A stretch of 64,000 nucleotides of DNA from Malacoraja senta (Eukaryota). Numbering within the stretch: position 1 is the first letter of the stretch; each line of letters starts with the position of its first letter. Positions 2,915 through 49,416 of the stretch are shown here, piece by piece. Both the position numbers and the translations under genes were made by a program. Location: contig CM075977.1 of the NCBI GenBank assembly GCA_038087875.1, positions 333,560,001-333,624,000 on the forward strand, in the 5' to 3' direction. Under the pieces are notes generated by a model. That model was given only the letters and a program-made list of their open reading frames with translations. It had not been told where the DNA came from and did not search any database.

Positions 2915-4152
2915 AATATATTTTGATTTTCATGAAGTATTTGACAAGATGTCAAGAGATTGTTGGCTTGAATTGGTTTTGAGGATGGACAGAAAATGAA
3001 GATTGAGAAAGAATGGGTCAGTGTTGGTGATTAGTGGGGTGCTGCAAAGAACCGTGTTTCAGCCTCACCAATTACAAATCTACATTAAATATTTTGGTGA
3101 GGGTATCTTGTTCAGACCATAATTATATTACAATTTAAGTACTCAGTTATCACATTTCCAATGAAGTCTCACATTTTCTCTTCTTATGTAGTTCCTTGGG
3201 ATTATCTTCACTCCAGTTCTTTGAGTTGTGGGCAGTTTGGTAAGGCCTCTCTGCAGGATCCACAAACTGTAATATGAAACTGGCGGGAAGTGCTAGATGT
3301 GGTGAGTGGTGGTTTGATTGGAGTGTTCTGCTTCCAAGAGGATACATTACTACTAAATGAAGTGCATTCATGTTTACTGATGATACCATGCCACATTTAA
3401 AAGCACATGCAAGAGGGATGCAAATAAACTGCAGAGTAAGATGTACAGTTTCAATTTGTGGAAGAAAGTGGAGATAAATAAAATATAATGAGAAAATAAT
3501 CATTCTGGGGGGGGAGGGGGGGTGTTAGGTGATTCTGTACAGAAAATTAATTCACAATTGTAGTAAGCAATCAGAAAATATATTGGCATGTTAACCTTTA
3601 CTGCAAGAAGAGTGATCTATAGGAGTGAGGAAGTTTACAGCTATTCTAGAGGGCACACATGGAGTATTGTGTAGGGATTTGGGTTAACTAATTTAACATA
3701 AAATTGCCTTAAATGGCATGTTAATGAAGGTTGACAATAATAATTCCTGAGAGGAACAGCGTATAAATGAAATGGGATTATATCTTCTGGAGTTCAGAAG
3801 AATGAGAGATCACTGAAATATCTACTCCTGGTGCCGAGATGAATGGGGGTTGATCTGACTAAGCACTTGATGTGGTAAATGTTGAGATGTTGTCCACTCC
3901 TACTAGCAATTAAGAACACGAGGAGCACAGGCTCGTGATAAGGAATAGACCATTTGCTGCTGCGATTAAAAATGTTTGGAATTGTGACTTTTTGGAATTC
4001 TCAACTTTTATTTAATATATTTAACGACAGAGCATTCGATTTTTGAAGACGGAAGGAATCCATATAATTGAATAGAGCAGTAAAGTGATAATGAGCGATA
4101 ATCATATTGAATTGTTCAAAGGGCTGTTTTACCCATTCCTGCTATTTCTTGA
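2915..4152 (+). mobile_element. Highly degenerate CR1 LINE (RT to 3' tail)
   Basis: Patchy similarity to the CR1 copy at 53040-54190 (GATTTTCATGAAGTATTTGACAAG, CACATGGAGTATTGTGTA, TCTGGAGTTCAGAAGAATGAG, tail-like ACCCATTCCTGCTATTTCTT). Confidence 0.6.
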
Positions 4153-4568
4153 GGATCTGGAATGACAATAATGGTCATAGCTAGAATTGGTCCATTACCA
4201 ATTATCTTTGTGTAAATTGTCCTTGACTATTGTAACTTGTATTAAACAATGTTACCTTAGCAAAGTTTAAAAGTACAGGTAGTTTTCGTATAATACATGT
4301 TTCTGCAATGTGAATTGGATATATCGTGAGAATGAATTAGGGAACACTTTTTGTATTGTGCAGTCTTAAGTGGTTAGAATGTCATTCCTATTGGGAACTG
4401 GAGAACTATTTAGAATTACTTTAGAAATTGGCAAGCCGAGAAGCTGTCTTCACAAAAAAAATGTTTCCATGTCGACTCCCCAAGGTAGTCAGACACCTCT
4501 TAAGAACACAGCTGCTACTTTCACCATGGAAGTCCACTAAAATTGACAAATGATTTCCTCTATTGATA

Positions 4569-4732
4569 GTAGACAAAATTGCTGGAGAAACTCAGCGGGT
4601 GAGGCAGCATCTATGGAGCGAAGGAATAGGTGACGTTTCAGGTTGATACCGTTCTTCAGTCCACCTGTTCCTGGAATAGGCCCAGCATGTCCATGGTTAC
4701 TTGGGCCAGATACTGAGAGTTGAACTTGTGGG
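4569..4732 (-). mobile_element. Chimeric insertion: PLE 3' terminus (4569-4659) plus ~70 bp copy of 5767-5838, 13-bp TSD
   Basis: TCCTCTATTGATA at 4556-4568 and 4733-4745; 4663-4732 is near-identical to 5767-5838. Confidence 0.85.
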
Positions 4733-6911
4733 TCCTCTATTGATACTTGTGGCAATGATATTCTATTAAACAATGTAACATACAGCCATTAGAATTTTCA
4801 GCTTGAAGTAACAGAAATAAACTTATAGTTATTAAAAAGATATATACTTTTGAAAATCCTGCAGAGAAAAATAACTCTTATTGCAAGTCTGAGACACTCG
4901 AGCCTCTAACCTCCTTTTCCTCATTGACACAATTTATAGTGCAATTTTCTACAGTGCAAGGTTTCTTAGCATTAGGTCAACTAATGCATTCTTACAAAAC
5001 TGTACACTTATTTTGTTACAATCAATTCTCACACAAAATTTATAATTCTACTAACTTTGTTACTACTTAAGTAGTTTAAAAAATATAAATAATTAAAATA
5101 TTGTCTCAAGTAACTGATTCCTTGTTATTTTTGCAACTTTTAATGGGTTTATAAATGAATAAAGAACACAGTTTGCTGCATTTAAATTTATATTTTTGTC
5201 CAAAGAATTTTCAAAAATTATTTGCAGCTATTTCTATTTGAATTTGTAACTGTTTACTGATAACATTTTTCCACAGTTTTTCAAATTGTGATTGATAGTT
5301 GGTTTTGTTACTACTTCAGACTTGCTTATTGGTATGTTCTATGCCTACTCAGTTACGATTTGCTGTCGTCTCATGAACATGACATTTGAATTAATCAGAT
5401 GCTAATGTGACACGTTCCTTGCATATAAATTTTAATTCCTTAGTTAAGATGGACACAAGAGCACATTAAATGTAAGGCCTTCTTACCTAGTGCCATTATA
5501 GAAATAATATGCTACCAGTCAAATACAAAAGGAAACTTCATGAATCCTTCTGACATCCCCTTGTCCAGTGGTTAGGAAAACCCATAGTACTCATGAATGC
5601 CAATTATTATCTGTGAGTGAATGTAAAGTCATGAGGCAAGTACTACAAAGTACAATAATTCAAAGATAATTCTTAATTTCTGAAAATGCATCAAAGCCAG
5701 TGGAGCATGGGCATTGAAGTTTGGACATGGCTGTTGGATTTATTGCATTGAACCATGCTGGAATTGACCTGTTACTGGAATTGGCCCAGCATGTCCATGG
5801 TTACTTGGGCCAGATACTCAGAGTTGAACATGGGCCCTCTGCATTCCTGTACAATGGCAGAAACCTTGCTCTGAAATAATTCTGATAAACCTTGATATTT
5901 ATGATCTTTTAAAATGGAACTAACAAAGTAGATAGAATAACTTTTAATTAAAGTCATTAAACTAAATCAAAATCATTATAACAAAACATTTGCTTTCCCC
6001 TTTTGCTTTCTAAGGCCGAGAAACCTCACTGTAATCAATGAATTTTGTAACTAAAGGATAAATCTAAAGAATCACATGAATACTAGTCCCTGCCGTTAGA
6101 CCTGATGGAGTGTCAAGTGGCAAGACATTCTGAAAGATTTGGCCCCACAGCTCATGAATTTATCAGTAAGCCCCAGGGACCCTCATGTCGAGCCTGGTTG
6201 TAATTAATTTTGTAATGCTGAATGCTAAGGGTCTCTTTTGGCGCAACCAGCCATAGCCAAAATGTTTCTGACCAAGGTGCTGAAATGTTTCAGAAGGTCA
6301 GGCGTTCTGTTTTCTGAACCTAGAACCTGAGCTTTGGTTAATGTATGCTTTAACCAAACAGGAATTCACCTGGTCCCAATAAGCAACATAAGCAAAAGGA
6401 GTCCCTGAAGCCAGCTCAGCCACCTTCCTACTCAATACCCATAACCCTTGATTCTCCTATTGCCCTAAAATCTATTTTGTCTTAGAATCTACTTAATGAT
6501 TCAGCATCCACAGTCCTCTGGTACCTGCTTTAGATCTTCAAAACAATACCTGGAGAATGGGAGATCAGATACATTTACAGCGCAGAAGGAGACCATTGAC
6601 ATTATGCTGCTGGAACTCTTCATACTCTCCCACCCTTATCTGCATTCAACTTAACATAATCATTTCATCTCATCTGGCTGATTGTTTCAATTTGCACACA
6701 ATTCAAACTGCATACCATTCTTTCAAACGCAATTATATTGTATTTTGAAATTCTGCTTCATGTAACACAATTTAAAAAAAGCATTAATTTAAATCTCAGA
6801 CATTTTAGGGGTAGAAGAATCTTGTTAAATCTAAGTTCAACATCGGGTCTCTGTGAGGCTTTGTGGACCATCAATTAATATCCCTACCACGTGCAGGATT
6901 CTAGATTAATT

Positions 6912-8624
6912 TTTTTTTTTTTTTTTTTTTAAATTTTTTATTTTTTAGAAGTACGGTAGATTACAGTAATGTACAACACGTATATATTAATACATTTTTT
7001 GTACCGCTTCACTTTTTTAAACTTTAAGAAAGAAAAAGAAAGAAGTAAGAAAAGTGAAGAAAGTGCGCAAAGGTTGTGAAGTGCAAAAGAGTGTTGGGAA
7101 AAGAAAGCCCCTTAGAAAAGAGGTTAGAGAAGGAAGTAAAGTTAGAAAATAGACCCTAGAAAAAAAAGAGAAAGAAAGAAGGAACAATCGCTCTATTATG
7201 ACTCTTATACCATACTTCATAGAGAAGGAACTACCAACCAAGTCTATTTTTATTTTACCTCCCATTACCAGGTCCAGATACCTTTTATTTATTTATTTGT
7301 TTTTCTAAATTACTATTGCACCTCATGCTTGTAATAGGTCCAAAAACGTAGACCACGTCTTTTGAAATTGATCTGCTTTGCCTACTAGGAGGAATCTCAT
7401 CTCTTCCAGATGTAATGTTTCCAACATATTTGATGTCCACATTTTTATTGTTGGTGTGGGCGCATTTTTCCAGAATTTAAGTATAAGCTTTTTTCCCATT
7501 ATTAGCCCATAATTGAGTAAATTCTTCTGATACACGTTTAATTCAGGAATACCTTCCGATATTCCAAAAATAATCCATTCTGGTTTTGGTACCAGTTTTA
7601 TTTTGATTAATTTTGAAAAAATATCAAATATTTCAAACCAGAATTTTTGGATTTTTGTACAAAAAACAAAAGAATGTGCTATGGTAGCTTCTTGACATAT
7701 ACATTTATCACAGATTGGTGAGACGTTAGGAAAGATTTTATTTAGTTTGGTTTTTGAATAATATAATCTATGTAATGTTTTAAATTGGATAAGCGTATGT
7801 CGTACGTTGATCGAGCATTTATGCACCTGTAATAAATGATTATCCCAACTCTCTTTTGAAATTTTTATACCTAGATCTTGTTCCCAATCTCTTCTAATTC
7901 CATCTGTTGTGGGTATTTCTATATTTAAAATGATATTATATAAGTATGATATTAAATTAGCTGATTCCGCCTTTGTCTTCATTGCTTCATCTAGTAAGTC
8001 GGAAGGCATATTATAATAATCTTTTGTGTGTGTTTTCAAATAGTCACAGATTTGTATATATTTAAAATATTGATTATTTTTCAAATTATATTTCAGTTGT
8101 AGTTGTTGGAATGATAGTAATTTTTCTAATTCATACAGATCTTCGAGCGTTTTAATTCCCATTCTTTCCCATTGTATAAATGCTTTATCTATGATTGAAG
8201 GTTTAAACGATGGGTTATTGACTATTGGTATTAAGAGAGATAGGTTTCTTAATTTTAGATTCTGTTTTATTTGCTTCCATGTTCTAATAGTGCTATATAT
8301 AATTGGATTTTTATTATAATTTTTATTATTCAAGTTTATTGGAGAGAGAATAATCGCTCCTATATTATTCGGGGAGCAATCCCCTTTTTCCATTATAATC
8401 CAGTCCACCTGCTGGGCAGAATTGTCCAGCAGGTGAATCATATTTTTAATATTTACTGCCCAGTTATAATACATAAAGTTAGGGAGCGCTAGACCCCCCA
8501 ACTCTTTTCGTTTGTTAAGGTGTGTTCTTTGTATTCTGTGGGATTTGTAATCCCATATAAAATTTGTAATGTCTGAGTCCAGTTTTTTGAAAAACTTTTT
8601 TGGGAGATATATAGGTATTGATTG
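6912..8624 (-). mobile_element. 5'-truncated L1-clade LINE (ORF2 C-terminus, 3'UTR, poly-A)
   Basis: ORF 7323-8501 with GGLALPNF and CDKC..H..C zinc-knuckle motifs; poly-T at ~6910-6930; TSD CTAGATTAATT at 6901-6911 and 8625-8635. Confidence 0.93.
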
Positions 8625-17600: not shown

Positions 17601-18099
17601 TTTAGTGCGAGTTCGGCACGTTTCAAATAACCGACTGTGTCTCCACTACGGGCTGTCTCCGTTTGGACTCGTGCGAAGACTGTGAAAACAGTTCCGCAGA
17701 GAATTAAGTGATCATCTTTGATACACTGTATAAACATGGCCCCTGGCGGGAATTGATTCATTTAATCATATTACACCGGTCTTGCAGATCCGAATCGCTG
17801 CCAGCGCGATTGGTGGACACGTTCTCCTGGGACTAAGAGTGAAAGTTAAAAGGACAACTGGGTTCTCAGGTGCTGACCGCCGGGGCAGCGGCGCTTTCAC
17901 CCCACGTACGCTCATTGCACCGCCTGTATTCGTGACCAACGCGAAGGCGGCACACTTGGTTAAACCTGTCAGGCGAAATAATTCAAGGAAACAAAATCCG
18001 TACCGTTTCACTCTCGGCGCCCCCCCCCCCCCCCCCCCACGCCTCTCCGTGCAGGGATCTCCGGCATCTGTGGCAGGAATAGGTGGCCGGTTACAATAA

Positions 18100-18700
18100 A
18101 GTCTACCTGTAAATCCCAGCCCCCTCTGCTGGACTTGCCGGGAAGCCGGGAGCGCGCACGTGACACTTTCGCCTCATTTCCCAGGAGGAGAAATTACGGG
18201 AGCGGGAGAGAGGAAACAAAAAAAAGTCTCACTGTTGCAATTGTTCTGCATTCATTCCGTGGCGCCCCGGAGCACCATTTGAAAGCTCTTTTTGTCACCT
18301 ACCTCTGAGCCTGACGACAACATTTGAACCTCACCCCCTGGAGCAGTCTCTCTCTCTGGACTTGTGTCACGCTTGCTAGAGGAAGGAGGCGCGCTCCCGC
18401 CGGCCCGCCTGCGCGTGACTGCAGGGCGCGCGTGCCCGGTGGGCTCAGCTCAGCAGAAGCCAAGTCGGCGGCCGCGCGCACAGCGAGAGCGCGAGCGAGA
18501 GCGCGCGCCGCCGGCCGCGGGGCCGCGCAACAGGTGTTCGCGGGTGGAGGCGCGCGGCCCGGAGCCGGTCCCGGGAGCCGGGCGCTCGCTCACGCGACTG
18601 CGGCTCGGACAGCGAGACTGTAGGCGCTCGCTCCCGCGATCCAGCCCCGCTCCCGCTCCCGCTCCCGCTCCCGCCTCCCCATCCCAAGCGCCCACTGAGG
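18100..18700 (+). promoter_or_regulatory. TATA-less CpG-island promoter and 5'UTR; E-box CACGTGAC at 18157-18164; (CTCCCG)n at ~18646-18675
   Basis: Extreme GC content, CGCG runs and a USF/TFE-type E-box upstream of a strong donor site. Confidence 0.7.
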
Positions 18701-18802
18701 ATGGCGGGCTGTGGACTAAACGAAGACCTCTTCTTCTCCTCCTCCTCCTCTTCCTCCTCGTTTCTCTTCAGCTACATCAAAGAGAGCCCATTCACTCAGC
18801 AG
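18701..18802 (+). CDS. Probable first coding exon or uORF start, MAGCGLNEDLFFSSSSSSSSFLFSYIKESPFTQQ; product unidentified
   Basis: Strong Kozak AGGATGG; 34 open codons ending in phase 0 at donor CAG|GTAAGC (GT at 18803). Confidence 0.55.
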
Positions 18803-21019
18803 GTAAGCGGAAAGATAGCGGGGCGACCGCGAGTGCTAGGTGGGCGCGCGTTATCCACTTAACGCTGCTGCCTCTTGGGTTCATCTCCTTGCACGGGGAG
18901 GCAAAGGGGGGGGAATTGCCACATTGCAAAAAGGGTGAGTACAAGCCGAGTTCACCGGCATCCTTCCTGTGTGGTAAAATGAACTTGTCAGTGCAAATAC
19001 TCATCATGTGTGGATTGCCACGGATATTTCCCCCAAACAATACTGGGAACGTGTCCGAAGCGGAATGTCATTGATGTAAATAATGCATAGAGAGTGTATG
19101 TTACCGTAACCACGTAACCGAGTACTGTAGAAAGTGCATCGCGGAGGCTGGCAGGTGACAGTTCTGTTTCAGCAATTAAATGGGCTGGCTTCAGTTTGGA
19201 GTGATTTCATGTTTAAAAAAAACGTGGAAAGGCTTTTTCCAGAAGTGGCCGGGTTAGTAACTCGTAGATCGGTGCAAAAGTGATGCTGTTCTAATGGAAA
19301 AGGAGAGGCAGCCGAGAGTCACCGTCTCCAGGAGACTCGAGAGCAAACTTCCCGTTACCAGTCTAATGTTACTGATTAGCCACCGATCAAGAAGCAGGGC
19401 AGGTTAATAATGCATTAATACATTAAACATAAGGGCCGGTATCTGTAGGGCAAAATAACCGTGTTGACTCGGACAAATATTCGCTTCTCTACTCAATTTC
19501 AAGCAACCTGCATCTCCTCAACGCGAGCGAGGAATTACACTCCAACCGGGCTAATAAATCACGTTATTCTATTTGGCTCGCCTTGCTGTCTGCACATTAA
19601 AATAGCATGACACCAGTAAAATTTCCATTATTTGGCGCTTTAACTAAAGGTTGAAATGTTAATGCAAAGTTCCCAGGCAGCTACGTTACTGCGAGTGGTG
19701 CTCTCGAGAGGAGAGCCGGGGTTTTAAGCATCTGATCATTTCACACTCGGGCAAACCGCTGCCTGATGTAACCAGGTAGCGTTGTCTCTGTGGACGGTTA
19801 TTGTCCTAATTACATACCACTAAGGGATCTAGTGTACTGATAAACCTGGGGAATTTTCAAGCCGGGATCAGAGCATTGACACAGAAAGGTGGTGGTTGAT
19901 TGGCAATGTGGCGGTGGGGAATTCAGAAGCACTGGTGGTTAATTTAGGTTAAAATTTAGGGCACTGTCGCCGTTCCAATAGCGTCGGAAGTCCAATAAAA
20001 GCACCTTTACTTTAAACCGCTTTATATTTTCGAAGTACTGAAGTGTTTTATGCACACGCACGGTTTATCTGAAACCGTTTGGCTGTTATTAATTTTGGAT
20101 CTTCTCGGCAGCGGATAGCGCTGTAATTAAGAGATTGACTTCTCACACACTGTCAATCGAGCAAAAACTTTGATAAACTCACTCACCAAAGCTAACACTT
20201 TTGCCTGAAGGGCTTCGTCATCTAATCATTGTCACGCTTCGTGATAGCGATCAAACGTTGTTTCAGTCGAGTTGAAATCAAATGGTTTAAATATTTGATT
20301 GGCGCACACACAGCGTTTTGTGGAAGACAACGCGGCGTGTAGGGACGTGAAATGTCAAGTGTTATTGCAAGGACTTCGATGCGGAAAAAAATTGAAGATG
20401 ATGTTCCGGTGTAATTCACAGATGATGGCAGGGTGTAAATTCGGGCTGAGAATCACCAGCTCAAGTCCAACGAAGGTCGAGGAGTTTGGATTTTCTTTTA
20501 TTGTAAGACAGCAGGTGGAGAACTGACAGTGGCGACACTATGAAGGCCAGCTCAGAATGAAAGGCTGATTCTTACTGCTTAAGCACTATTAATAGTAAGC
20601 AACATTTGCTTTTGAAACATGGACTGCCTTAACCTCGTAATGTAGGATTGCTGATCACACTCGGGCGTTCGAGCCAGGTTAGAAGAAGATTCAATACATT
20701 TCAACCCAAAATCAACATCCAGAAAATGAAATATCTCAAGGATATGGCAAATCTTCACCGACTTGTTACCAAACAGAAGGTCCTCCCTATTGTACGTAAC
20801 TATTTCAGTTCTAACACAATATTTCTTAAAATAATATTTTTATACCGTAGCAGACTTTCTGAGTTTAAGAATTGACTTATTCTATGACTCTCAAGGCCTG
20901 CTGATCTGGTTTAGAAATTCATACGATTAACATGGTTGTGGGTAAAAAGATGAACCAGTCTGCTTTGCTCCCCTGTGTTGCTGATGTTTTAAAAATGCCT
21001 CTTTTACTTACTTTGACAG

Positions 21020-35153: not shown

Positions 35154-36174
35154 AGGTACACAAAAATGCTGGAGAAACTCAGCGGGTGCAGCAGCATCTA
35201 TGGAGCAAAGGAAATAGGCAACGTTTCGAGCCGAAACCCTTCTTCAGACTGATGGGGGGGGGGGGAGAAAAAAGGAAAAAGGAGGAGGAGGAGCCGAGGG
35301 CTGAGGGCTGAGGGAGGGATAGGAAGGGGAGGAGACAGCAGGGGCTAACAAAATAGGGAGAATTCAATGTTCATGCCCCCAGGATGCAGACTCCCCAAGC
35401 GGAACATGAGGTGCTGTCCCTCCAATTTCCGGTGTTGCTTGCTCTGGCCATGGAGGAGACCCAGGGGTCGGATACGGATACGGGAGTTGAAGTGCTGAGC
35501 CACCGGGAGGTCAGGTTGTTTTTTTGCGGACCGAGCGGAGGTGTTCGGCGAAACGATCACCGAACACCTCCGCTCTCACCGCCGGACTCTCCGGACTCTC
35601 TTCTCTCCAGCTTGGTCTCACCGATGTAGATCAGCTGACATCTAGAGCAGCGGATGCAATAGATGAGGTTTTAGGAGATGCAGGTGAACCTCTGTCGCAC
35701 CTGGAACGACTGCTTGGGTCCTTGAATGGAGTCGAGGGAGGAGGTAAAGGGACAAGTGTAGCGTCTCTTGCGGTTGCAAGGGTAAGTGCCTGGAGTGGGG
35801 GTAGTATGGGAGGGAAGGGAAGAATTGACAAGGGAGTTACGGAGGGAGCGGTCTTTGCGGAAGGCAGACATGGGGGGAGACGGGAAGATGTGGCGAGTGG
35901 TGGGGTCACGTTGGAGGTGGCGAAACTGACAGAGGATTACTTGTTGTATGTGACGGCTGGTGGGGTGAAAGGTGAGGACTAGGGGGACTCTGCCCTTGTT
36001 GCGAGTGGGGGGATGGGGAGAGAGAGCAGTGTTGCGGGGTATGGAAGAGACCCTTGTGCGAGCCTCGTCTATGGTGCAGGAGGGGAACCCCTGTTCCCTG
36101 AAGAATGAGGACATTACAGATGCCCTGGTGTGGAACGCCTCATCCTGGGAGCAGATGCGGCATAGACGGAGGAA
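35154..36174 (-). mobile_element. Penelope-like element (Neptune-type linker), 5'-truncated, GIY-YIG region and 3' pLTR
   Basis: VPLVLTFHP, Cys linker PCNRKRRYTC, IYCIRC..YIGET, HFNS, LGSLHPGGMNIEFS; 13-bp TSD TTGGTATTATTGT at 35141-35153 and 36175-36187. Confidence 0.92.
35220..35247 (-). ncRNA. Minimal type I hammerhead-like motif in the PLE 3' repeat
   Basis: CUGAAGA-A-GGGUU(UC)GGCUC-GAAA-CGUU; minimal hammerheads with a palindromic helix III remnant are known in PLE pLTRs; helix I pairing is weak here. Confidence 0.55.
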
Positions 36175-36459
36175 TTGGTATTATTGTTATTGGTGCTGAC
36201 ATCAACCATCTCTGTAGATCATTATAATGTTATTAAATTAGCTATACAGGCTCCTAAATTATTTGATTGATGTTATGTGTGTCGAGATAGATTTTATTGC
36301 TCTGTTCTGCCCTACTCTGATGCCAGAGAGGAGAAACACACCAGAGGTATGCCCAGTTCACAATGCCTTTTTTTCTGAATTGGGGTGTATTGGATCATCA
36401 TGGGGCTTTTTGATGCAGCTGAAAGATTAGTAGGTGAAACATACAAATCAATGCATTGT

Positions 36460-37250
36460 AAAATGTAGATGTCAGGCGATACTCTGTTCCCTGTGATGGA
36501 GGAGATATTGAAAAAGGGGAGAGATATATATGAGATAGTCCAAGTGAATTTGTGGGCAGGGTGAAATGTAGTAGTTGAAGAATTCAACATGTTCTGTGGA
36601 GGGGAGTAGGGGGGTGGGGGTGCAGATAGCAGCCCCAATGCCGTCGTCAGTGTGGCTGAGAAAGAGTTGGACAATGCTACCAGGGTACATTTAGAACAAG
36701 GACTGTTCAATATAACGCAACAAGAGGCAGGTAAAACTAGGGCTCATGCAATTGCCCATGGCTACACATTTCACCTGAATAAAGTGAGAGGAGTTAAGAG
36801 TAGTTCTCAAGGGGAGGGCAGTGGGGACAGGTTTTGTCAGGTGAAGGAGAGTGTTAGCTGAGGGGAACTAATTGGGTCTCTGTTCAAGGACGAGCCAGAG
36901 GGCCATGAGGCCTTACTGATGGGGAATGGAGGTGTAAAGGGATTGGACATCCATGGTAGATGAGCGGATGAGGGTCTAAGAATTGAAAGTTATTGAAGTG
37001 TTGAAGACTGGAAAAGAAGAGGCAAGTTAAAATCAAGATATTTGGAGATGAGTTCGGTGGGGCAGGAGCAGGCAGAAACAATGGGTCTGACAGGACAGTC
37101 CTGCTTGTGGATTTTGGGAAGGAATTGAAGGGCAGTCTGGGGTTGGGGAACTGTAAGGGTGGAAGCTGTGGAGGGAAGATCACAATGAGATTGCCATTTG
37201 TCTGGGAGTTGGCATCCTGATGTTTGTCGGTGGAGTTATGGTCAAGGTTA
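36460..37250 (-). mobile_element. Older Penelope-like RT fragment
   Basis: Decayed PIVSACSCPTELISKYLD, MDVQSLY, GVAMG, TDDGIGAA, HPAHKFTWTIS; lies outside the TSD of the neighbouring PLE, so a separate copy. Confidence 0.8.
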
Positions 37251-47750: not shown

Positions 47751-47908
47751 CCTTTAATAGAAGATGGACACAAAATGCTGGAGTAACTCAGCAGGACAAG
47801 CAACATCTCTGAAGAACAGGAATGGGTGACGAAAGGGTCGAGACCCTTCTTCAGACCCTTCTTTAAATCTTTGGTTTAAACCAGCATCTGCAGTTCCTTC
47901 CTATATAT
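47751..47908. mobile_element. Short PLE-end element, centre deleted
   Basis: GACACAAAATGCTGGAGTAACTCAGC..GACCCTTCTTCAGAC then GGTTTAAACCAGCATCTGCAGTTCCTTCC; possible TSD TTGTAAT. Confidence 0.75.
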
Positions 47909-48203
47909 TTGTAATAATTTATTCTTATGACACCACTCCTATATCTAGGAATTATTTGAATAGTGTAGCTCTGCTCTCTTCACACAAACTTCCATCAGCA
48001 ATCTGTGGCTTGGATAACTTTTATACTTGGAGAGCTGCTACCTTCAGAAATATGTCTCTGGACTGAAATATTTTAAGACATTTATAGCTTGCTGATAGCT
48101 TTTGACATTCAGTCATCTCCTAAATCAAGGTGTTATCTACATACTCTGATGAACATTCTTCAGGCAACTCCACACAAATAGAAACTGATCATTTATCCTA
48201 CTG

Positions 48204-48419
48204 TTAGACACAAAATGCTGGAATAACTCAGCGGGACAGGCAGCATCTCTGGATGGAAGGAATAGGTGATGTTTCAGACTCAAGTCTGAAGAAGGGTCTC
48301 GACCCGAAATGTCACCCATTCCTTCTATCCAGAGATGCTGCCTGTCCCGCTGAGTTATTCCAGCATTTTGTGTCTTTCTTCGGTTTAAACCAGCATCTGC
48401 AGTTCCTTCCAACAGCATA
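48204..48419. mobile_element. Palindromic head-to-head PLE-end element with hammerhead-like core at 48286-48313
   Basis: ~65-bp near-perfect inverted arms; centre TTCAGACT-CA-AGTCTGAA; 10-bp TSD TATCCTACTG at 48194-48203 and 48420-48429. Confidence 0.88.
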
Positions 48420-49416
48420 TATCCTACTGCTCTCTGTGTGGTAAATTATCACATTGTCGATAGAAACAATCCTGCTATTTTCCACTTTGAAATGCAACCG
48501 TTTGTGGTATTACCTTGCAGAATATTTAAGCTTTTAAAGTAGTTGGGGATGAAAATTAATAAAATATGCATGCATATTATGAAAGTTTAATTGTGGACTT
48601 CCTTTCACAAATTACCAGAAAAATGCTGGAATGCAATTTAATAAAATTTGACGAATTCACTTATCATGAAACAATTGTCTTAATCTTATTTTCTATGAAT
48701 TATAGCCATTTAATAAAACAGTGAATCATTTGACATACTTGGCAGATTTTGACAGTCCCTGCAAACTGCTCAGAGCCCACGTGACATTAAAAGTGGTTGA
48801 GTGAAAGCTCTGATTCTGCCCGTAGCTGTTCTTATGTTGTTGTTTCCCTAGTTGGTTGAGGTATTCACCTGGCTGATGCTTCATCAGTATATGTAAATCA
48901 TCATATAAGTAGTTAGATTGGATGCCAACGGCATTTTAACAGCTTGGAGTGTACGCTACGGAGGGCTTCTTGAGGTTCCACAAAGAAAATTTAGGCCAGT
49001 TTTGCACCAAGCTCACAATGAATGATCTCTTAGTCAACTGAGTTCCATCTGGGTGACATATTATGCAGCAAAATATTTCCGGTCAGAACCTGGCAAGTTA
49101 TTGAAGGTGAGGAGCTTTACAATGTGACTTGTCTGTTAAAATTTGACGGGAGAATTAAATAAAGTCTCACCATCATGAGATAATGTTTCTATTTTCTGGT
49201 CTAATTTTCAGTTTATTATACATCAGTTGTTTTGGGATGAGACCCCCGTCCTAATTTTCACTTGTAAAGATGATTGCGAGCCACCATTCTGAGCTGCTAT
49301 AGTTGTTTTGATGAGGGCACTTACTGTATGCCATGCTTTTGTGTAGAGATGTGGCTAACTGTGATAGTTTTCTCATGTGCTTGCTTATTTTGGTCTTCTT
49401 TGATTGAATAATTGAT

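Follow-up and report, generated by a model that had tools for sequence, protein, structure and literature searches.

The analysed sequence, a 64-kb stretch of skate or ray DNA referred to here as the window, contains a locus in which an exact 13-bp direct repeat encloses the end of a Penelope-like element (PLE), three filler bases and a copy of a segment that lies about 1 kb further to the right. How can part of a retroelement and a copy of nearby unique DNA come to lie within one target-site duplication? A preliminary description of the locus had proposed that the nascent cDNA switched, during integration, from the element RNA to nearby DNA or to a local antisense RNA. Here we follow the structure of the insertion, the origin of its parts and its presence in related organisms, and weigh the ways in which it could have arisen.

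Structure of the Locus

The features of the locus are listed in Table 1. A repeat search found the 13-bp repeat at exactly two positions, and the pair is 100% identical, as had been described. From left to right, the insert consists of the left repeat, the PLE 3′ end, the point at which the PLE is truncated on its 5′ side, 3 nt, the captured 70 nt and the right repeat. The sense strand of the PLE piece is the minus strand, and its tail-less 3′ terminus adjoins the left repeat. The captured copy is 94% identical to its source over 66 nt (E 6e-25, within-window search). The preliminary description had this copy follow directly on the PLE end; the match to DNA ~1 kb off stands, but the three bases TCC intervene.

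The two ends of the captured copy differ in character. At its right end, source and right repeat have CCTCT in common, which makes a 5-nt microhomology at the join and agrees with the rejoining proposed earlier. Directly before this motif the source has C (5835) and the right repeat has T (4733). At its left end, where the source is entered, there is at most 1 nt of microhomology, and the three bases ahead of the copy are unexplained. The 7-mer AGTCCAC is found at the junction of PLE and copy (4658–4664, covering the filler) and again in the left flank (4531–4537), 19 nt to the left of the duplication. As a sign of templated filler it was given no weight, since chance may produce such a match and its geometry with respect to the strands is awkward.

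Table 1. Features of the insertion and of the source segment (positions in the window).
Feature	Positions	Strand	Evidence
Left copy of the 13-bp target-site duplication, TCCTCTATTGATA	4556–4568	none	Repeat search and reading
3′ end of a 5′-truncated Penelope-like element (PLE), 91 bp	4569–4659	minus	Homology to four other copies in the window; contigs of relatives
Minimal hammerhead core, apparent relic	4632–4659	minus	Reading; family consensus; minimal hammerhead features of PMC4209133
Filler TCC, 3 bases	4660–4662	none	No match to the PLE consensus, where ACTGA follows, or to the source
Captured copy of 5767–5834, direct orientation	4663–4732	plus	Repeat search, alignment, four related organisms
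Right copy of the 13-bp target-site duplication	4733–4745	none	Repeat search; CCTCT at 4734–4738 shared with the source as microhomology
Source of the captured segment (5767–5834), followed by C and CCTCT (5836–5840)	5767–5840	plus	Single-copy

The Repeat as the 3′ End of a PLE

The 91-bp piece belongs to a very abundant repeat and aligns with four other copies in the window (35156–35247, 47770–47857, 48205–48277 and 48375–48286). In each of four related organisms hundreds of contigs stop matching exactly at 4569, and we therefore take this position as the terminus of the PLE family. The first of the four copies forms the 3′ end of a decayed, 5′-truncated PLE on the minus strand (35156–37100), which carries several stops and frameshifts; it is the same ~90-bp unit as the focal insert. 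The translation of this longer element shows motifs like those of a reverse transcriptase (RT), followed by NLIYCIRCSRCQLIYIGETK, GDRFAEHLRSV and a conserved C-terminal block, and its GIY-YIG region has cysteines between the two motifs. The Pfam GIY-YIG model matched the first piece of the element weakly (E 0.011), at 16.5 bits and thus under the cut-off of 22.6. Pfam detected no RT domain in the broken pieces of this element and nothing in four ORF pieces. A word search with a 147-aa ORF gave a single match, a metagenomic protein, and a protein atlas gave no match.

We took the defining features of PLEs, including the order of RT and GIY-YIG, from PMC8557442. Hallmarks of these elements are an optional tail of 30–40 nt, inverted 5′-truncated partners, frequent 5′ truncation and short target-site duplications (PMC8557442, PMC11167929). 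In the window, the unit at 48205–48412 has the partner, the tail and the duplication, and the focal copy is tail-less, 5′-truncated and flanked by the 13-bp duplication. Judged by its sequence features, the repeat at 4569–4659 is accepted as a PLE 3′ end.

Two of the other PLE units deserve a description of their own. The composite unit at 48190–48429 contains an inverted 5′-truncated copy (48205–48277) and a direct copy (48286–48375) that starts near the hammerhead core, followed by a 36-nt tail (48376–48412) and ~4–5 extra bases; the whole is enclosed by a 14-bp target-site duplication with 13/14 identical positions. The hairpin formed by this pair attracts spurious microRNA-type Rfam matches. 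In the short unit at 47765–47900, an antisense copy ends 2 nt past the start of the hammerhead core, and its last 12 nt are repeated in tandem (47841–47852 and 47853–47864), with an oppositely oriented tail-like segment after them. This is another junction with locally re-copied bases. Among the 150 ORFs of at least 72 aa in the whole window Pfam found no host protein domain; the only families were RVT_1, in 4 ORFs (best E 1e-40), and zf-RVT, in one, which points to several LINE-type elements in the window.

A Putative Relic of a Minimal Hammerhead

The motif TCTTCAG at 4653–4659 is the reverse complement of CTGAAGA, so that the last PLE base (4659) would be the first C of a hammerhead core. 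A PLE end of ~90 bp that stops at precisely this base had been described before, and the length of 91 bp found here bears this out. On the minus strand, the family consensus reads CTGAAGA-A-GGGTC..GACCC-GAAA-CG-TC, with the first A after CTGAAGA bulged, and after the core it continues for ~65 nt to a fixed end, GCATTTTGTGTC(TAC). The minimal hammerhead of PLEs described by Cervera and de la Pena has a base between positions 9 and 10.1, a G10.1–C11.1 pair and a palindromic 15.2–16.2 (PMC4209133). We tested for the minimal type-I form, defined as CUGANGA, a bulged base before G10.1–C11.1, GAAA and a palindromic 15.2–16.2. By reading, as distinct from a scored match, the family consensus fits every feature given in PMC4209133. 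Rfam gave no hammerhead match for the whole window at the gathering threshold, nor for two PLE copies searched permissively (E up to 10); around these two copies the permissive scans returned only chance hairpin matches, to the inverted PLE pair. As the Rfam models miss the motif, the hammerhead assignment rests on reading and not on a score.

In the focal copy, CTGAAGA on the sense strand is followed by a degenerate helix II and by GAAACGTC, and with the 5′ strand of helix I absent the hammerhead could not be active. In view of both defects, we regard the ribozyme of this copy as a relic. The other two short PLE copies in the window with a readable 5′ end stop ~2–3 nt from the first C of the core, a sample too small to carry weight.

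The Captured Segment and Its Source

The preliminary description had named two outcomes that would speak against a template switch. One of them was that the 70-bp captured piece is itself a dispersed repeat or a part of the PLE. In the window the piece occurs only twice, as the copy and as its source. In four related organisms, the depth of contigs over the source is 1–1.7x that of its flanks, and the figure for the PLE part is ~1e7. The captured piece is thus neither a dispersed repeat nor part of the PLE.

Two ORFs that cover 5721–5957 gave no credible Pfam match, and contigs of the relatives show a 2-bp indel between species inside the source segment. On these two grounds we treat the source as unconstrained, non-exon DNA. 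The possibility that it is an exon was considered and rejected, as ORFs without a credible family and a 2-bp indel argue against coding constraint. The DNA strand of the source does not fold better than shuffled sequences (z -0.39). A search of the window for another copy of the flanks of the insertion, which would be a paralogous empty site, did not find one. The window also has a GC-rich island at 18000–19000 (63% GC vs ~35–40% around it), which resembles a promoter or a first exon; a search of it yielded neither a readable coding exon nor an orientation. We regard the focal locus as a neutral, ancient scar with no visible function.

The Insertion in Related Organisms

The stretch 3200–7200 was matched by sequencing runs from the source species and, at 20–33% of sampled words, by runs from at least nine other organisms. 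Contigs of four other organisms (B, E, G and J) were aligned to 4100–6100 at 90% likeness. In all four, the left flank runs 22–28 nt into the PLE piece before the contigs break in the repeat. This overlap is shorter than our bridging rule of 31 nt; an empty site would read differently. Other contigs of the relatives cover 4632–4836, 4634–4713 with 4685–4781, 4685–5796, and 4670–4744. The PLE end, the copy, the repeat and the right flank are found together in 4/4 relatives. The presence of the whole structure in four relatives indicates that the insertion is real, that it is no assembly artefact and that it is older than their split.

The second outcome that would speak against a switch was that orthologous loci have the copy but lack the PLE piece, which was the case in none of the four relatives (0/4). 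An empty site, with one copy of the target sequence and the source alone, had been expected from a comparison with related species. The comparison did recover the insertion, whole and in each of the four, but no empty site was seen among them. Since all four already carry the insertion, its pre-insertion state is deduced from the duplication alone.

The relatives also make it possible to polarize the differences between copy and source. At 4678 all four have T, the state of the source, so that the A of the window is a later change in the copy. At 5774 all four have C, the state of the copy, and the A of the window is likewise a later change, here in the source. At 5829–5830 the source of 3/4 relatives has two extra T and a G, which gives AACTTGTGGG as in the copy. 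The sole difference without an explanation by later change is G at 4715 vs C at 5819. Three of the four differences between copy and source thus arose after the insertion, and the copy was about 71/72 identical to its source in the common ancestor or at the time of insertion.

Some further differences surround the locus. One contig of organism J joins 4744 to 5154 with 24 other letters in between; J has a lineage-specific deletion of ~409 bp directly to the right of the insertion (4745–5153 in the window). Over 4703–4836 the contig depth in the four relatives is 60–100x that of the single-copy flanks, and many short-sided joints link ~4520–4526 to ~4752–4765 in their contigs. The raised depth may reflect a moderately repeated element in the flanks or spill-over from the pile of PLE contigs. 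In organisms B and G, the left flank has 19 extra bases behind 4176 relative to the window.

One Insertion Event

The duplication adjoins the canonical PLE terminus on its left side and the captured piece on its right side. That two independently defined boundaries match at 13/13 positions by chance has a probability of ~1e-6 or less. Because the 13-bp duplication encloses both parts, we conclude that the PLE end and the copy entered in one event.

Two events could be imagined instead: a local duplication followed by insertion of a PLE beside it, or a break that was patched with a stray piece of PLE and local DNA without any target priming. Filler DNA of mixed origin does occur at repaired breaks, and as there is no empty site among the four relatives, the order of events is not directly seen. 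A PLE arriving later, however, would have made a duplication of its own that left the copy outside, and here the exact 13-bp repeat encloses both. Furthermore, the PLE piece starts precisely at the canonical terminus of the family, and the length of the duplication matches that of another PLE insertion in the window (14 bp). A canonical terminus together with a matching duplication length points to endonuclease nicking and target priming and not to random patching. We therefore consider two separate events, or patching of a break, to be distinctly improbable.

A single event might also have been the retrocopying of a chimeric read-through transcript. In that case a PLE fragment would have been situated directly downstream of 5767–5838, and the flank would have been carried along as a 5′ transduction. 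PLE terminal repeats can indeed mobilise unrelated sequence that they flank or adjoin (PMC3846280). The source, though, has no PLE next to it in the window or in the covering contigs of the four relatives (five genomes), and three bases that match neither part separate the two. In addition, the copy ends exactly at the microhomology with the target, which the 5′ end of a transduced segment has no reason to do. Read-through is accordingly the explanation to which we assign the least credit, and we think it very improbable.

With the two adverse outcomes looked for and neither found, the switch of the cDNA from element RNA to a second, local template, as put forward in the preliminary description, is supported.

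A Proposed Locally Templated Detour

We favour a single target-primed PLE insertion that was finished by a locally templated detour with DNA as the second template, to which we give a probability of roughly 0.55. As the element is in minus orientation, the cDNA would be the plus strand, extended rightwards from a primer that ends at 4568. The 72 nt copied after the PLE part are of plus sense, and their template should then have been of minus sense: the minus DNA strand of 5767–5840 or an RNA of the same sense.

In the proposed sequence of steps, the PLE endonuclease would first nick the plus strand after 4568 and the minus strand 13 nt to the left, so that the minus strand of the right-hand end would be left with a 3′ overhang of 13 nt. 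The plus-strand 3′ end of the left duplication copy would then serve as the primer, and reverse transcription of the PLE RNA, begun at the internal, tail-less site that is usual for it, would yield 4569–4659. The structure of this junction can be read directly; the priming process is what we infer from it. Synthesis would leave the PLE RNA at the first C of the hammerhead core after 91 nt, and TCC would be added. Resection of the right-hand end in the 5′-to-3′ direction would expose its minus strand as single-stranded DNA, on which the free 3′ end would prime ~1.02 kb from the break; either the PLE reverse transcriptase or a Pol-theta-type repair polymerase of the host would then copy ~72 nt. 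Finally, the strand would be released with CCTCT at its tip and anneal to the 13-nt overhang, followed by fill-in and ligation. The microhomology itself is observed, and such a closing process would account for it. If the overhang retained its last base as a terminal mismatch, this would explain the T at 4733, where the source has C.

The same single insertion could have been completed on RNA, if the reverse transcriptase jumped to a local minus-sense transcript (nascent pre-mRNA or non-coding RNA), copied ~72 nt of it and was captured at CCTCT. Reverse transcriptases of this kind prefer RNA, and for non-LTR elements, jumps with few untemplated bases are well documented (references in PMC2666801). 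Such a jump would fit with the three filler bases and with a switch that lacks microhomology. On the other hand, none of the listed sequencing runs that match the locus is recorded as RNA, and no host gene or strand that could provide the transcript was found, as Pfam gave transposon reverse transcriptases only for the 150 ORFs. An RNA that diffuses freely would hardly be expected to have its origin only 1 kb away, and a tethered nascent transcript would thus be needed. An RNA template also does not predict on which side the source should lie, as the DNA model does. Taken together, we rate a local RNA template as rather unlikely.

The DNA-templated detour is favoured by the position of the source. 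To be joined, the nascent strand has to reach that side of the break where the source is located; the source is in direct orientation and is DNA from the 5′ side of the element. Its side, its orientation, its position and the end of the copy at homology with the overhang are as predicted for copying of a resected strand, and for this reason we prefer a DNA template to a tethered local RNA. By analogy, a habit of the family may lend further support, namely the composite PLE of the window with its 14-bp duplication, 36-nt tail and inverted truncated copy.

Several points weigh against this reading. The source is entered without useful microhomology and after three unexplained bases, and the entry junction looks more like jumping of a reverse transcriptase than like Pol-theta priming. 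Moreover, a distance of 1 kb between template and break is large by the standard of classical templated insertions. That no empty site was seen, and that the contig overlaps of 22–28 nt into the PLE part are under 31 nt, count against it as well. The sequence fits DNA and RNA as the second template alike, so DNA is the favoured choice and not a proven one.

Significance of the Locus

The locus can be read as a legible record of the second half of PLE integration, in which the priming site, the point of exit from the RNA, the nearby detour and the closure by 5-nt microhomology with a 13-nt overhang are all visible. That PLE integration may make small local duplications was stated earlier as a general claim; here it is based on one locus. 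It is conceivable that PLE integration in this genome regularly ends in detours of this kind, with a short PLE RNA that has a fixed 5′ end at the hammerhead core. We consider such regularity improbable at present. If it were true, a telomerase-related reverse transcriptase would often continue from the 5′ end of its RNA onto single strands of the cut target DNA, and the family, with its hundreds of thousands of insertions, would have seeded many small direct or inverted duplications of flanking sequence. Cartilaginous fishes would then owe local sequence duplications systematically to their PLEs. Should such scars prove common, statistics of side, orientation and distance could show whether the target is resected before 5′ joining, and could tell the PLE enzyme from a host polymerase as the copier. 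Unless the pattern is systematic genome-wide, what we have here is an ordinary, if well-preserved, scar, and its kind is known.

Comparison With Known Systems

The nearest parallel among LINEs is the zebrafish element ZfL2-2, for which a large fraction of the extra nucleotides at the 5′ end derives from the flanks (Kajikawa, Yamaguchi and Okada, 2012, via PMC4245944). Joining of the LINE 5′ end by annealing is an established pathway (PMC4245944, PMC2666801). ZfL2-2 resembles our locus in that the extra bases are templated by nearby DNA and that the 5′ end is joined by annealing at short homology. The published extras are described as several bases long and as coming from the immediate flank, whereas here ~72 nt come from 1 kb away. 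A further difference is that ZfL2-2 is a LINE, and the element here is a PLE with a GIY-YIG endonuclease. When the locus is compared with flank-templated 5′ extra nucleotides as a class, it shows both the structural order and the origin from nearby unique DNA.

Within the PLEs, those of Adineta vaga have duplications of 8–10 bp, 5′ junctions with microhomology and host DNA inside the duplications, and template jumps were described or proposed for them (PMC3846280). They share with our locus the class of element, the short duplications, the unrelated host DNA inside these, the microhomology at 5′ junctions and the invocation of template jumps. In A. vaga, the captured DNA is situated between terminal repeats, measures 0.9–1.5 kb or comprises a whole gene, and is non-local (PMC3846280). 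By contrast, the piece captured here is short, is located at the 5′ junction of a solo truncated end and has its source 1 kb away in the same DNA. For a PLE protein, biochemical data are available from the purified anole enzyme, which initiates reverse transcription internally and cuts and extends both strands; the later steps of PLE integration have not yet been reconstituted in vitro (PMC11167929).

The detour can also be set beside products of DNA repair and of other retroelements.

Pol-theta end joining and synthesis-dependent strand annealing make templated insertions that as a rule are shorter and have their source at a distance of tens to hundreds of bases. The locus resembles these insertions in the direct copy from the opposite flank, in re-annealing at short microhomology and in the few unexplained bases at the switch. 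It differs in that the primer would be the nascent cDNA, and the sequence does not allow a host factor to be assigned. The Pol-theta type is defined by microhomology of at least 2 nt at both switches and by dependence on the host polymerase; at the switches seen here, the exit has 5 nt (CCTCT) and the entry at most 1 nt. Chimeric retrocopies of LINE-1, such as U6/L1, reportedly arise by template switching in which the second template is an abundant cellular RNA from elsewhere. They are similar to our locus in that two templates contribute to one insert, which lies within one target-site duplication and has the element at its 3′ side. Their second template is not from the neighbourhood of the insertion itself, whereas here it is local.

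Our literature searches returned no report of this exact form for PLEs, a result that counts as weak evidence of absence. The kind of mechanism is not new, as flank-derived 5′ extras of LINEs and capture of host DNA by PLEs have already been described. To these the locus adds a long, distal and cleanly resolved example in a vertebrate PLE.
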